DNA of 64,000 nt from Macrostomum lignano (GCA_002269645.1 NIVC01003713.1:17130-81129), one strand, 5' to 3'. Numbered from the stretch's first letter, positions 14,001-20,000 are shown. Numbers and translations are program-made. Notes: generated by a model not told the origin, from the letters alone.

Positions 14001-17000
14001 TGGAATCTGAGGAGCTGGGAGGGTAGGGACTGGAATCTGAGGAGCTGGGGGGCAGGGACTGGAATCTGAGGAGCTGGGGGGCAGGGACTGGAATCTAAGA
14101 ATCGAAATGGTTAATCCAATGCAGCAGAGTTATAACGATATTGAAGTGGGAGCACAGGTGAACTAACATAGTTCTCAATAAACTCACCCACAGTTCGGAC
14201 TTCTCAACCAGCATGCGGATCTCATCCAAGTCAGTCCTAATCTGCTTATAGGTGCTGACATCGCTAGCCGAAACCAGCAGTTGGACCTGACGGAAAGCTT
14301 GCAGAACCTCCTGACGCTGGCTGAAATGACGGAACAGCAGCTGCAGAGCGCCGCTAACAACCTGAGCATGATTGTGCATGATCAGGTACAGCAGCACCCG
14401 AAGGAACAGCCTGCCGCCCTGCCCATCAAGATCCAGAGCGTGCCCAGAGTCGGAGCCTTCGCAGAACATGTCCACGGTTGGGCTGGAATAAGATTTCGGG
14501 GTAAAAAAATGCCCAACAAAACGACCACTGCAGTGCGATAGAGGAACATCTCAGCCGCCAGGGGAATATTTTCCTAAAATGAAATCGGTTTGTCCTGACC
14601 AGTTATGCCTAATTATGTTAATTAGCTAGCATAATTAATTTATGTACTCGAAATTAGGCGCTTCCTTCGTGTGAAATCGCCTAAAAACTGCTTTTATGGC
14701 CTGGTCTGCTTTTATGTTTTTATGATATAAACTGCTATTATACTGGATGAGCAGTTGCTAATCAGAATGTATGCAGCAGCCAATGCTCTGCTCAAGCTTC
14801 GATTTTAACTGTTGTGCTCTAGGTCCCACGCACTCTCTCTGCTCAATATTGAAATTAGCAAATGAACGTACGTATGAACTATTTCATATGCGTCAGACTG
14901 TCAGATGTACATTGATTGCTACTTTCATAGCCAACTCATAGCAGCACTCAAATAAATATCACAACCAATACTCAAGTCAGGGCCAAATTCAAAACATTTG
15001 TCTCTTGCATCGGTGGCCAGCGATCAATTTCAGAATTTCAGAATATGCCGAATGCAAAAAAATCACATGAGGAGTGCAGAGAGAGTCTGTGTTTGCTCTG
15101 TTTGCGGAAAGCCTCGCGCTCAATTTGGTCGGTAGCCAATTTTCCTGCTGAGGATTTGGTGCCGAATTTCGCCTCTGTACAGTACATTCTGCCGACCGGC
15201 TTGTGTGACGGGTGTCGACGCATCATTTCATCTCTATCTGGTCCAGCGCCTCGTGAGTTGCCACCAAGGCTAAACTATGAGCAGATGGTTGCCGACCTGC
15301 AGAGTCTGCCTCCGTCCACAAGAAATAATCCGCATTGCTCTTGCGAACTGTGCGAGCTTGCCAGATCGAAGAACAGCAGCAAGTTGACAACTTCTGTCAG
15401 CTCTTACAGTACTGGCGCTGCTGCATCTCGTCCAGGACGACCTCGAAAACATCCATTGTCGGCAGCTGATGCAGCACAACCACAGTTCATTTGCTCGTTT
15501 TGTCGATCAGAAATTGGCCGTGGCAAGAAACACAACTGCTCAAGAGCAACGCGACTGACTAATCTGCAGCAGGGCGTCAGTCCTGATACGCAGGACATGC
15601 TGGCCAGCAGCTGCATATCAACAAAGGCTGCAGCAAGTGGCTCCAGCTGTGTTTCCTTGTCACGGATGGAAGGTGGTCGCCCAATGCGCGTGACTGTTGG
15701 TGCTAGTGTGGGCAATGGAGCAACCAGCTTTCCTGCAACTTCTATCAGCACAATGAAGACACTGAAAGGTGTGCTGAATCTTAGCAACAATCAGACGCTG
15801 CAGGTCGCGCAGGTACTGAGAGCTGGTGCGAGCTCTTCGCGAGCAGTTGAATCTAGGCTGAAAGATTCATTAGTGACTCAGAATCGTGTATTGGAAGACT
15901 TTTTTAAACTTCAGACACTTCAATTCGAGCTGTCATCTTCTGCCATTGGTGATCGTGCTGCTGTCCTCTGCACTGATGCTTCGCGCCTCATTGAATTTAT
16001 TGTCCAACAGCGAGGAGCCTCTAACTTCGAATGCCGGCTGGGGCTTGATGGTGGCGGAGGTTTTTTTAAGATTTGCGTGTCTGTCGTTGCGTCCACGTCT
16101 GACCATCAGGCGCACGGCGGTGCTGCTGCAGTTCACGAAAGTGTGCGACGCCACTCACAGTTCAATGACGCCGGAGTGAAAAAAATTATAGTTCTCGCAA
16201 TCGTCAACGACATCTCAGAAACGTACAAAAATGTAAAAACACTGCTACAGGCTGTTTCTGTGGTGGAGCTGTCTGCTGTGACTGTCACAGACATGAAGCT
16301 AGCAAACATTCTCTGCGGACTCCAGCCTCACTCGTGTGCTCACCCATGTCCGTACTGCGAGTCTACTGCACCACTGACGACAAGCGGCAGGCCACGAACC
16401 CTCGGTAGAATTCGGCAGAAAGTGCAGGAGTTCAATTCTGCTGGACGAGTTTGGAGCAGAGCGAAGCAGTTCATGAACTGTGTCAATCTGCCGCTGCTGG
16501 CTGGTGATGATGACGAGGAAGTGCTGATGCTGCTGCCCCCTCCTGAACTGCATCTTCTGCTCGGAATCAGTAACAAATTGCTTGATTCTTTGAACGAAGC
16601 TTGGGGCGAAGACCGCGGATTTGCATGGCTACAATCTCACGGCATCGTGCGAGCGGGGTACCGCGGCGGCACAATGGAAGGCAACGCTTGTCGCAAATTG
16701 CTGCTGATGGCTGAGGTTCTTCTTGAAGACGTTCCTCATGAACTACAGCCCTTCGCCCAGTGCTTGATTTGCTTCAACAGCGTTGTTAATGGAGCATTTG
16801 GCCAGGAATTGGCCCCGGATTTTGGTGAGCGAATCGAAAATTTTGGAGCTGCATACCTGGCACTGGGATTGACTGTCACGCCCAAAGTGCATGTTCTCCT
16901 TTGCCACGTGAGCGACTTCTGCCATCGCACTGGTCGTGCACTTGGAACTTGTAGCGAACAGGCAGTAGAGAGCGCACACTCGGATTTCCAGCGGACTTGG

Positions 17001-20000
17001 CAACGCTACAGGCTGCCAGCCGATCACCCACAGTTCGGCAATAGGCTGCTGCAGGCAACAGTGGCGTATAACAGCTGGCATATCTAATGCAGTGACATAT
17101 TTAATGCGGTGATGGCTTTTCATTTGACTAAATTTACTGTCGTGTTGTGCAGCCTACTTTGCTGCATGCTGTTGTTACCAGCACTACTACATGGATGAAG
17201 AAAAACAGTATAATAGGAGCAATACTTCCATGACTATTTGTGAAGGGATCTGTCTCAAAGTTCAACATCCAAAAGTTTGAATATTGATTCTATTGGCAAT
17301 GGAAGTAATTCAAAAGAAATATTCAATATCTAAAAAAACTTTTGACCCAGACTTTTCTGCTCAGATTAGCAATATTCTCTTCTTTATCTGTGACATGTAT
17401 CTCGCAGTACCTGCATGCTAAAACATAAACTGATCATGAATTGCTATATAAGTTATATTATAATCATATATTTAATTTTATTGATATAAATTTTAATAGG
17501 TGCTATCCAAATGTCCAACCTGCTGCTCAGTTTTGATAAGACCCTTTCTCTGAAACGCTGGATATTTCTATTTTTTTCTTATAATTTTTGAGTACTAATA
17601 ATATGAACTACAAAGTGCTCACTTTCTATAACTAATACTAATATATATTGATATTAAATAGCTACAGATTTTAATACGAACACAGCTCATAAAAGCAGTC
17701 TTTAGGCGATTTCACACGAAGGAAGCGCCTAATTTCGAGTACATAAATTAATTATGCTAGCTAATTAACATAATTAGGCATAACTGGTCAGGACAAACCG
17801 ATTTCATTTTAGGAAAATATTCCCCTAGCAGCTGAGATGTTCCTCTATCACACTGCAGTGGTCGTTTTATTGGGCATTTTTTTACCCCGAAATCTTATTC
17901 CAGCCCAACCGTGTGTCCTCAGCCTGGGCGGCAATGGCCTCAACGTCGAGATTCTGACTGGTCGGGTTTCGATAACAGAGGCCGAACCCGTCGCTGTCAT
18001 TGCCGGTGTACAGGGTGTCGAATTCGGACTTGAATACGCTCAACAGGTACGTGATTCGATAGTCTAACCGGACATTGAGAATGTAGTGCAGAATCTCCAG
18101 AATTCTCTGCTTAGTCTCCATGACAATGTTCTCCTCTTGTCGGCTGCGATTGATCTGCCGGTTCTCTTCGGTTACAATGGCTTTGGGGCCCTGCGGTTTG
18201 GGCGGAATTTGGTCATGGGGTCATTTGGTCATGGAGTCATTTGGTCATGGGGTCATTTGGTTATGGAGTCATTTGGTTATGGAGTCATTTGGTCATGGGG
18301 TCATTTGGTTATGGAGTCATTTGGTCATGGGGTCATTTGGTCATGGGGTAATTTGGTCATGGGTTCATTTGGTCATGGGGTCATTTGGTCATGGGGTCAT
18401 TTGGTCATGGGGTCATTTGGTAATGCGGTTATTTGGTCAGTGGGTCATTTGGTCAGTGGGCCATTTGGTCATGGGGTCATTTGGTCATGGGGTAATTGGG
18501 GTCATTTTGGGTCATTTGGTCATGGGGTAATTGGGGTCATTCGGTCATGCTCACCTGACCGCGACCCTGATGCTGCTGAGTCTGCTGCTGCTGCTGCGGT
18601 CCATTAGCAGTCTCAGCTCCGCTAGTCTCTTTCTTGCCAGCAGCTGAGGCTGCAGACTTGGCCCCAATAGGTATGCAATCCAGAATAGCCAGCAGCATCT
18701 TCATCAGTCTGAGCAGATCTTCAAACGGATAGAATCCAAAGTACACAAGGTTCCTAGCCAGGCTGACAATTTCGTAGGTGAGGCTATTCTGTCCGGTGTC
18801 GTGCGATGACCAGCCGCTATCCGCAATGTCCTTCAGGTAGCGCTCAACGTAGGCCAGGGTCTTGGCGAACCGGGGCTTGATGCTCTCGCGCAGGGGGTTC
18901 TCCATCTGGTTGCCAAGGGGTATGCGAGTTCGATACTTGACTGGATCTGAGATGAATGGCGATTTCTAATGGAGAATTGAGTGCGAGTTCTTATGGGGTA
19001 TTGAGGGCGATTTCTAGTGGGGCATTGAGGGCGATTTCTGATGGATATTGTGGGCGATTCTAATGGGGAATCGAGAGCGATTTCTAATGGGTATTGTGGG
19101 CGATTCTAATGGGGAATTGAGAGCGATTTCTAATGGGTATTGTGGGCGATTCTAATGGGGAATTGAGAGCGATTTCTAATGGGTATTGTGGGCGATTCTA
19201 ATGGGGAATTGAGAGCGATTTCTAATGAGAAATTGAGAGCGATTTCTAATGGGGAATTGAGGGCGATTTCTAGTGGGTATTGTGGGCGATTCTAATGGGC
19301 AATTGAGAGCGATTTCTAATGAGAAATTGAGAGCGATTTCTAATGGGGAATTGAGAGCGATTTCTAGTGGGTATTGAGGGCGATTTCTAGTGGGTATTGA
19401 GGGCGATTTCTAGTGGGTATTGAGGGCGATTTCTAGTGGGTATTGAGGGCGATTTCTAGTGGGTATTGAGGGCGATTTCTAGTGGGTATTGAGGGCCATT
19501 TCTGATGAGTATTGAGGGCAATTCTAATGGGGCATTGAGGACGATTTTTAATGTGGTGTTGAGGGCGATTTCTAGTGGGGCATTGAGGGCGATTTCTAAT
19601 GGGTATTGTGGGCGATTCTAATGGGGTATTGAGAGCGATTTCTAATGGGGTATTGAGAGCGATTTCTAATGGGAAATTGTGGGCAATTTCTAGTGGGTAT
19701 TGAGGGCGATTCTAACGGGGTATTGAGGGCGATTTCTAAGGCGTTGATTTTCAAGGGGTGATTTCTTAGAAACTTAAAACGCGATATTAAATTTAAATTC
19801 TAATCCTAAATTTAAATACGAGCGTAGAATATTTACCTCACTACTCACCTGATCCGTGTGCATCTCCGAGTACTCTGACACAGTGAGCACATTAGGAATT
19901 TCGCTCCACAGCCTGGCGTACTTCACCGGTTTAATCTCCTCGTTGGGATCCCGGTCAACGTGCAGGTGCAGCATCAGGCGGCAGAAGGAGGCGCGCAAAT

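Follow-up and report, generated by a model that had tools for sequence, protein, structure and literature searches.

Can a transposon that has landed in a coding exon carry its own way out of the messenger RNA? The question is raised by a 64,000-nucleotide stretch of the Macrostomum lignano genome (GCA_002269645.1 NIVC01003713.1:17130-81129; hereafter the window), in which coding exon 8 of an inositol 1,4,5-trisphosphate receptor (IP3R, also ITPR) gene is split by a 3,441-bp element whose ends, read on the gene strand, resemble the two splice sites of an intron. A first-pass annotation of the window took these ends for a self-contained, frame-preserving intron. We find that the locus is better explained, with moderate confidence, by an autonomous cut-and-paste transposon of recent activity that inserted into an exon in the ordinary way, probably disruptively, and is tolerated through IP3R redundancy.

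The element was located at 14473-17913 by sequence reading together with an inverted-repeat scan (Table 1). Its two arms of 231 nt lie in inverted orientation and are 97% complementary. Their outer 44 nt are identical, and the terminal 29-mer occurs twice in the window, once at each tip. The tetranucleotide TGTC is duplicated on the two flanks. The sole long open reading frame (ORF) between the ends is intact and encodes 680 aa, antisense to IP3R. Everything that the first-pass annotation had described here, including the position within exon 8 and the TGTC duplication, was found where it had been placed, and the intact ORF with its paired ends agrees with the description of the element as autonomous-looking. 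A RAG2-like partner gene was sought between the element ends and none was found; the other ORFs there are at most 128 aa long and all overlap the 680-aa frame. An Rfam scan of 13500-19000 returned no RNA family.

The interrupted gene lies on the minus strand. To build its model, coding pieces were picked by eye in three-frame translations, their boundaries were set at GT/AG, and the element was removed along with one TGTC. The 15 pieces joined in this way gave 2,212 aa from Met1 without a stop. Over 1,198 aa the model is 99.4% identical to a UniProt protein of M. lignano named 'Inositol 1,4,5-trisphosphate receptor' (P0141), which carries the full set of IP3R Pfam domains. The element separates ...AIAAQAED from MFCEGSD... 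in exon 8. An alignment with eleven animal IP3Rs placed the insertion site inside a short conserved motif, QAExIF.G, directly downstream of a variable, indel-rich linker.

Versions of this gene without the element are represented among known proteins. P0141 and a second UniProt protein of M. lignano, P0142, are distinct from each other (96% identical where aligned), and in both the AEDMFC site is uninterrupted and bears no scar. A query of 1,615 aa was needed to recover them; when the 163-aa peptide of exon 8 was searched against the protein collection, only short fragments of at most 64% identity came back, with no M. lignano record. Because no GT-AG intron could yield the scarless sequence from the interrupted allele, P0141 and P0142 come from uninterrupted copies or alleles. 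The empty allele or paralog for which the first-pass annotation had suggested a check thus exists. The interrupted allele therefore needs no rescue, which speaks against the intron reading. Of the DV1 assembly of M. lignano, 180 Mb lies in blocks duplicated at >=95% identity, and extra large chromosomes occur in the line (PMC5730564). Transcripts overlapping repeats were left out of the GenBank annotation of DV1 (PMC5730564), and this exclusion probably explains why the interrupted locus has no NCBI protein.

We then compared the window copy with other copies of the element. Eight were examined (the window copy, L001-L005, L010 and L006, which represents a sister family), six further copies being on GCA_002269645.1 contigs. 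L001-L005, each at 5417-8873 on a different contig, are 99.65-99.97% identical to one another, and all five encode an identical, intact protein of 680 aa. This is a sign of a very recent burst, and judged from these sequences the element is probably still active. The window copy is 98.6-98.8% identical to L001-L005 and carries 59 private differences. Its private substitutions are about fourfold rarer within the 2,043-bp ORF, where there are 10, than in the 1,398 bp outside it, where there are 31 together with four indels. This pattern suggests that the window copy comes from a slightly different lineage, which split off while selection for transposase function was still acting, and the divergence of the copy therefore does not date its insertion. 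T>C changes account for 13 of the 41 private substitutions, and four of them, A>G on the IP3R-sense strand, are clustered in a 43-nt stretch of the left arm. P0002 was considered as the annotation of the window copy and rejected, as it is a different, frameshifted copy.

The same comparison bears on the possibility of an assembly artefact, in which a transposon copy would have been misplaced into the IP3R exon. In its favour, the genome is highly repetitive and redundant, and the public protein set has no entry for the window copy. Nevertheless, we regard an artefact as extremely improbable. The 59 private differences mean that the copy is not a collapsed consensus, its 4-bp duplication is a perfect repeat of exon sequence, and removal of the element with one duplicate restores the frame exactly.

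The family of the element was examined through its transposase. At 99% identity, the protein of the window copy matches M. lignano hypothetical proteins (P0001, on five contigs); it shares 57% identity with a second M. lignano family (P0003), and with unnamed proteins of other assemblies the figure is 28-38%. Neither Pfam nor a direct search of PDB by sequence gave a match to the 680-aa protein. Among 13 homologues (28-57% identity), no change occurs at D335, D416, C435-x2-C438 or H616-x4-H621, and >=90% of them keep E638 and E642; which of these residues are catalytic we infer from their spacing. A family profile searched against PDB had HzTransib (6pqn) as its top hit, a weak one (E=0.094), in which VH....H...SE..SE was aligned to the Transib sequence. 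With an AlphaFold2 model (mean pLDDT 78), Foldseek against PDB returned 35 hits at E<=0.001, and all of them were RAG1 (mouse or zebrafish-type complexes), BbRAGL (amphioxus) or HzTransib. These hits had E values of 1e-11 to 4e-6 over about 500-680 aligned columns, and the next hit followed at E=0.07. As far as the predicted fold goes, the label 'RAG1-like' in the first-pass annotation is right; it does not extend to a RAG2-like partner, which is missing, or to the duplication, which is 4 bp and not 5.

The transposase profile also matched 9,371 clusters at 50% identity (E<=0.001), and 1,393 at E<=1e-30, in a library of 1.84 billion proteins. Taken with the structural model, this is a large uncurated family with a predicted RAG1/Transib fold and no matching Pfam model. 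Parts of such transposases were found in composite gene models. P0011, a UniProt protein of M. lignano with 1,171 aa, has the N-terminal half of a family-2 transposase at residues 69-439 and behind it a complete set of peptidase-M16 (insulinase) domains, and in P0018 a transposase part is fused to a ubiquitin-conjugating domain. These chimeras are probably artefacts of annotation, produced where other insertions lie in genes or close to them.

The ends of the element were compared with those of Transib, whose consensus consists of a CACAATG heptamer, a variable 23-bp spacer and a AAAAAAATC nonamer, mirroring the recombination signal sequence RSS23 (Kapitonov and Jurka, PMC1131882). Both tips of the window element have CACGGTT at positions 1-7, a spacer of 23 nt at 8-30 and AAAAAAATG at 31-39, and the element as a whole runs from CAC to GTG. 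In the sister family L006 the ends are made of CACGGTT, a 22-nt spacer and AAAAAATTG. One end of the frameshifted copy L010 (8874-8883) has CACAGTT in place of CACGGTT, and so agrees with the canonical RSS heptamer CACAGTG up to its sixth base. The target-site duplication (TSD) is 4 bp in all eight copies and perfect in seven, and the element boundaries are therefore not a chance match. A 5-bp duplication was also tried and was rejected, since it fits copies only where the next base of the flank is, by chance, a C.

These features place the element in the CACTA/Mirage/Chapaev/Transib (CMCT) group, with Transib-like ends and fold and a Chapaev-like TSD. Members of this clade share CxxC/HxxxH motifs, CA...TG tips, a D/D/CxxC/HxxxxH/E layout and TSDs of 2-5 bp (PMC12730594). 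Within it, CMC elements have TSDs of 2-4 bp, and variable TSD length was recently reported among Transib relatives (bioRxiv 10.64898/2026.08.26.747230). The window element resembles Transib (e.g. Helicoverpa zea HzTransib) and the RAG1 core in its predicted fold and its D...D...CxxC...HxxxxH...E layout. It further resembles Transib in having one transposase ORF of ~680 aa within 3.4 kb, CAC...GTG tips, and the succession of heptamer, 23-nt spacer and A-rich nonamer. It differs from Transib in its TSD (4 bp, not 5), its inverted repeats (231 nt compared with ~38) and its heptamer (CACGGTT compared with CACAATG), and its sequence similarity to HzTransib is marginal. Unlike RAG-like (RAGL/ProtoRAG) transposons, it has no convergent RAG2-like gene beside the transposase ORF. 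The 4-bp TSD, within the reported CMC range, and the CA...TG termini are shared with CMC-Chapaev, and Chapaev itself gives a 4-bp TSD; the heptamer-spacer-nonamer end of RSS23 type, in contrast, is the hallmark described for Transib and sets the element apart from Chapaev.

We investigated how these ends would behave when transcribed as part of IP3R. On the gene strand the element starts with CACG/GTTGGG (the slash marks a potential splice point) and finishes with ...GTTTTGTTGGGCATTTTTTTACCCCGAAATCTTATTCCAG/CCCAACCGTG, the acceptor-like sequence being ...TTTTTTTACCCCGAAATCTTATTCCAG/C. The donor GT and acceptor AG named in the first-pass annotation are both present, and its arithmetic is correct. 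Splicing at the two sites would leave 4 + 10 + 4 = 18 nt, by which AED-MFC becomes AED-TRPTVD-MFC with no stop. Because the outer 44 nt of the arms are identical, the arithmetic is valid in either orientation, as had been claimed. The companion claim that any codon phase would do is nearly true, with the scar containing a stop (TGA) only after a phase-0 insertion whose TSD begins with A. A second donor-like site, GGG/GTAAAA (17885), would leave an in-frame scar of 42 nt with the same AG.

The strength of the two sites was estimated with matrices built from the introns of the IP3R gene itself, which are small and noisy (14 donors, 13 acceptors); a generic donor matrix of human splice-site frequencies was used as a secondary score, and the conclusions rest on the IP3R-gene matrix. 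Donors 1-7 of the gene are AAG/GTCCGT, CAG/GTGGGT, ATG/GTCTGT, CAG/GTGAGG, CAG/GTAAGT, GAG/GTAAAT and CAG/GTGAGC, and donors 8-14 are TGG/GTGAGT, AAG/GTAAGT, GAG/GTAAGT, CAG/GTAAGG, CAG/GTTAGC, CAG/GTTTGT and GAG/GTGAGT. The element's ACG/GTTGGG scored 1.7 bits, below all 14 of these (2.4-12.6 bits in leave-one-out scoring, mean 8.7), and ranked 26th among the 212 GTs from the exon-8 acceptor to the exon-8 donor. The acceptor AG was unremarkable, with 1.3 bits against 0.2-9.4 (mean 5.2) for the 13 real acceptors and a rank of 39 among 278 AGs. By these scores the splice-like sites are poor, not impossible. Moreover, the two arms cofold at -438 kcal/mol, and both sites are then fully paired within a 231-bp duplex.

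The introns of the gene have a further peculiarity in that most of those in the window contain long minisatellite arrays (26537-27154, 23394-23732 and 25325-25786; also 2089-4505, 7309-8632, 13459-14103, 18207-18548, 18958-19739 and 20214-22124). The donors of introns 1 and 3 (AAG/GTCCGTCTGTCT and ATG/GTCTGTCTGT) coincide exactly with the starts of two (GTCT)n arrays, which thereby create two of the four IP3R donors with a pyrimidine at +3. In intron 2, a 41-nt array consists of about 11 repeats of the end of exon 2 with its donor CAG/GTGGGT.

Several observations weigh against our reading of the locus as a simple disruptive insertion. The remainder of the IP3R gene is intact over 2,212 aa, although a young insertion would look alike. 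Weak donors with a pyrimidine at +3 serve 4 of the 14 IP3R introns (GTCCGT, GTCTGT, GTTAGC and GTTTGT, at 27154, 23732, 6654 and 5439), among them the CAG/GTTTGT to which the first-pass annotation had correctly pointed. The acceptor-like AG is preceded by an AG-free zone of 43 nt with a plausible branch A at -20. Close to the exon end there is no strong rival donor; internally the best is CAG/GTATGC, about 1 kb in. Finally, in the sister family L006, whose transposase is 57% identical, the GT at end positions 5-6 (there GTTAGG, a slightly better donor) and the CT at 11-12 are both kept, and the scar would once more measure 18 nt.

Such observations could be accommodated if the inverted ends formed a functional, orientation-independent spliceosomal intron, with U1 binding at ACG/GUUGGG the nonamer complement serving as polypyrimidine tract, and the AG 10 nt from the far tip as acceptor; an exonic insertion of any kind would then shrink to 18 in-frame nt, and the element would be an autonomous introner. 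The sites exist, the frame is preserved, the gene tolerates GTT and GTC donors, and when all 60 terminal nucleotides were shuffled, an equal-or-better in-frame pair arose in only 0.4% of cases within 12 nt of the tips and 2.5% within 30 nt. When CAC and the nonamer were held fixed and only positions 4-30 were shuffled, the corresponding values rose to 4% and 13%. The splice-like pattern is thus only weakly unusual.

The conservation of the two sites has another explanation. The T7 tract upstream of the AG is simply the nonamer read on the other strand, with a spacing of exactly 23 nt to the heptamer, so that neither its presence nor its conservation in a sister family calls for splicing. The GT is part of the heptamer. 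The kept GT and CT bases fall in a conserved block, CACGGTTRGGCTGG, that is presumably read by the transposase. Since the transposase itself requires the heptamer, spacer start and nonamer, in which the conserved bases fall, their conservation does not discriminate between the models. It was seen in one sister family, L006; in L007, L008 and L009, homologues from other assemblies, the repeats are cut by contig ends or a search for a paired terminus found none. Two details of the other copies run counter to an intron. L006 has an extra AG 7 nt upstream (CAG/TGCCCAG/), which would give an out-of-frame scar of 25 nt, and the CACAGTT at one end of L010 removes the -1 G of the donor.

An intron that neutralizes exonic insertions might leave its copies in exons, and the first-pass annotation had proposed a test for enrichment there. 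Empty sites were reconstructed for the seven other copies, and none of the seven, a small sample, lay in an evident exon. The stop-free span over the junction is 15-92 codons in these copies and 226 in the window; their flanks are AT-rich or short-ORF DNA, most with 27-48% GC. No preference for exons is visible in this set. Together with the weak sites, their burial in a duplex and the Transib plan of the ends, these results do not bear out the idea that the ends are an evolved or demonstrated self-contained intron. A functional intron at this locus is in our judgement unlikely, and we are at least as doubtful of the wider proposition of a RAG1/Transib-fold family whose ends double as a complete orientation-independent intron, in which the heptamer region would act as donor and the nonamer complement as polypyrimidine tract and which would leave a six-codon scar.

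Precedents exist for the kind of element that had been proposed, and the novelty claimed for it is dated. Introners of Aureococcus bring both splice sites with them and leave 12 additional nt in frame, of which the element contributes 4 and the TSD 8 (PMC9860276). Some introner families with terminal inverted repeats (TIRs) or long terminal repeats include autonomous copies, although most copies are non-autonomous (PMC12130899). A word search of these two texts, limited to their wording, found no mention of flatworms or Transib. The mechanism published for introners, landing in an exon and spliceosomal removal through carried or TSD-borrowed sites, is the one suggested here. Introners, however, are defined by many annotated, spliced copies, whereas in the present case, known from genomic sequence, only one of eight copies is exonic and the splice-like sites are weak. 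In maize Ds/dSpm, cryptic sites in or near the transposon ends allow partial rescue of exon insertions. Imprecise splicing of Tc1 from mutant pre-mRNAs of nematodes is summarised in PMC12779559. In those systems removal was established by cDNA sequencing, in contrast to the sequence potential described here.

The long arms raise a different possibility, one independent of GT and AG. In SOS splicing, pairing of the inverted ends leads to the removal of exonic DNA transposons from mRNAs of C. elegans and of human cells, with variable and mostly non-GU-AG cuts (PMC12779559). Applied to M. lignano, the paired arms would be recognised by a system of the AKAP17A/CAAP1/RTCB type without the spliceosome; the transposon would be cut out at variable positions inside the arms or close to them and the ends ligated, leaving scars of mixed frame. 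By analogy, the window element with its near-perfect 231-nt arms is an obvious candidate substrate. Like C. elegans Tc1/Tc3/Tc4 and the human HSMAR2 reporters, it is an exonic DNA transposon with pairing ends, and some of the published products are in-frame with short scars. The published system needs pairing of the repeats, works with scrambled complementary repeats and rarely uses GU-AG, and its factors are required in nematode and human cells alike (PMC12779559). It is known from C. elegans and human cells, however, and the published cases involve Tc1, with repeats of 54 nt, and further elements of the Tc or mariner type, whereas here 231-bp arms enclose a 3-kb loop. A long perfect duplex may also be edited or diced instead. 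Because the cut positions vary, SOS splicing would not be expected to give a single 18-nt junction. We consider that it operates at this locus to be a possibility worth entertaining, though not a probable one.

The reading we prefer, an ordinary exonic insertion, would account for the locus as follows. An autonomous transposon of the CMCT group would have inserted into one of several near-identical IP3R copies or alleles of M. lignano. The GT at one tip and the T-tract with AG at the other would be by-products of the end architecture, read on the opposite strand, and not an evolved intron. The interrupted copy would most likely be a null allele, or one that is poorly rescued, and would be tolerated thanks to the intact IP3R copies of a highly duplicated genome. 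Polyadenylation-type signals in the IP3R sense, three AATAAA and four ATTAAA inside the element, may add a risk of premature termination; the first of them, an AATAAA at 17871, lies 42 nt from the tip. If the element is removed from some transcripts at all, removal would probably be heterogeneous, through cryptic sites or hairpin-triggered excision, rather than by one clean built-in intron.

Other features of the window were noted. A dispersed repeat of about 710 bp occurs at 10768-11481, in IP3R intron 9, and at 28862-29574, upstream of the gene (88% identity); when translated, it suggests that another repeat family with an Arg/Ala-rich ORF is present. A second gene, on the minus strand at ~29000-40000 upstream of IP3R, has PDZ-like stretches (e.g. 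GFGFSLRGG...GLYVSAV...GDELVGV), and its introns are likewise full of low-complexity arrays. Between 40000 and 46000 the GC content falls sharply to 0.30-0.37, from ~0.5 elsewhere.

Table 1. Features of the element, the interrupted IP3R exon and the predicted junctions, with the TSDs of the eight copies. Positions are those of the window.
Feature	Position	Strand	Sequence or remark
Left TSD copy	14469-14472		TGTC (GACA on IP3R strand); read from sequence; same as 17914-17917
Left TIR, 231 nt	14473-14703	+	Four private T>C changes inside (14517, 14536, 14556, 14559)
RSS23/Transib-type terminus	14473-14511	+	Heptamer CACGGTT 14473-14479; 23-nt spacer 14480-14502; nonamer AAAAAAATG 14503-14511
Mirror-image RSS23/Transib-type terminus	17875-17913		
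Putative 3' splice-site AG	14483-14484	-	Complement of CT at end positions 11-12
Transposase ORF, 680 aa	15045-17087	+	Antisense to IP3R; ORF scan
Right TIR, 231 nt	17683-17913	-	First arm transcribed in IP3R sense
Second in-frame donor-like GT	17884-17885	-	GGG/GTAAAA; end positions 29-30; 1.3 bits
Putative 5' splice-site GT	17908-17909	-	ACG/GTTGGG; end positions 5-6
Right TSD copy	17914-17917		TGTC; read from sequence
IP3R coding exon 8, 5' part	17914-18190	-	...AIAAQAED
IP3R coding exon 8, 3' part	14188-14472	-	MFCEGSDSG...VEKSELW; ends at donor TGG/GTGAGT
Predicted junction of 18-nt scar			GCTGAGGACACACG/CCCAACCGTGGACATGTTC
Empty-site sequence			GCTGAGGACATGTTC
Read-through from exon into element would enter			CACGGTTGGGCTGG
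TSD, window copy			TGTC
TSD, L001			ATCT
TSD, L002			TTGC
TSD, L003			AACC
TSD, L004			TATA/AATA (two copies, one mismatch)
TSD, L005			CTCG
TSD, L006			GAGC
TSD, L010			GGCA

The locus offers a clear case, in an animal used as a regeneration model, of a young insertion into an exon by a transposon that is apparently live. The combination of a RAG1/Transib fold, an RSS23-like end and a 4-bp TSD is useful for transposon classification and for the evolution of RAG-type ends. Minos-mediated integration was not achieved in M. lignano (PMC5730564), and the element may offer a native transgenesis vector for this animal. The interrupted allele is a natural test of whether flatworms remove DNA transposons from mRNA, either by cryptic GT-AG splicing or by the SOS pathway. 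If the ends did work as an intron, the element would be an autonomous introner in an animal, the RSS-like end plan would be inherently pre-adapted for splicing, and full-length copies could sit in coding exons. Were the 18-nt junction to prove dominant, introner biology would be extended to an autonomous element in a bilaterian.

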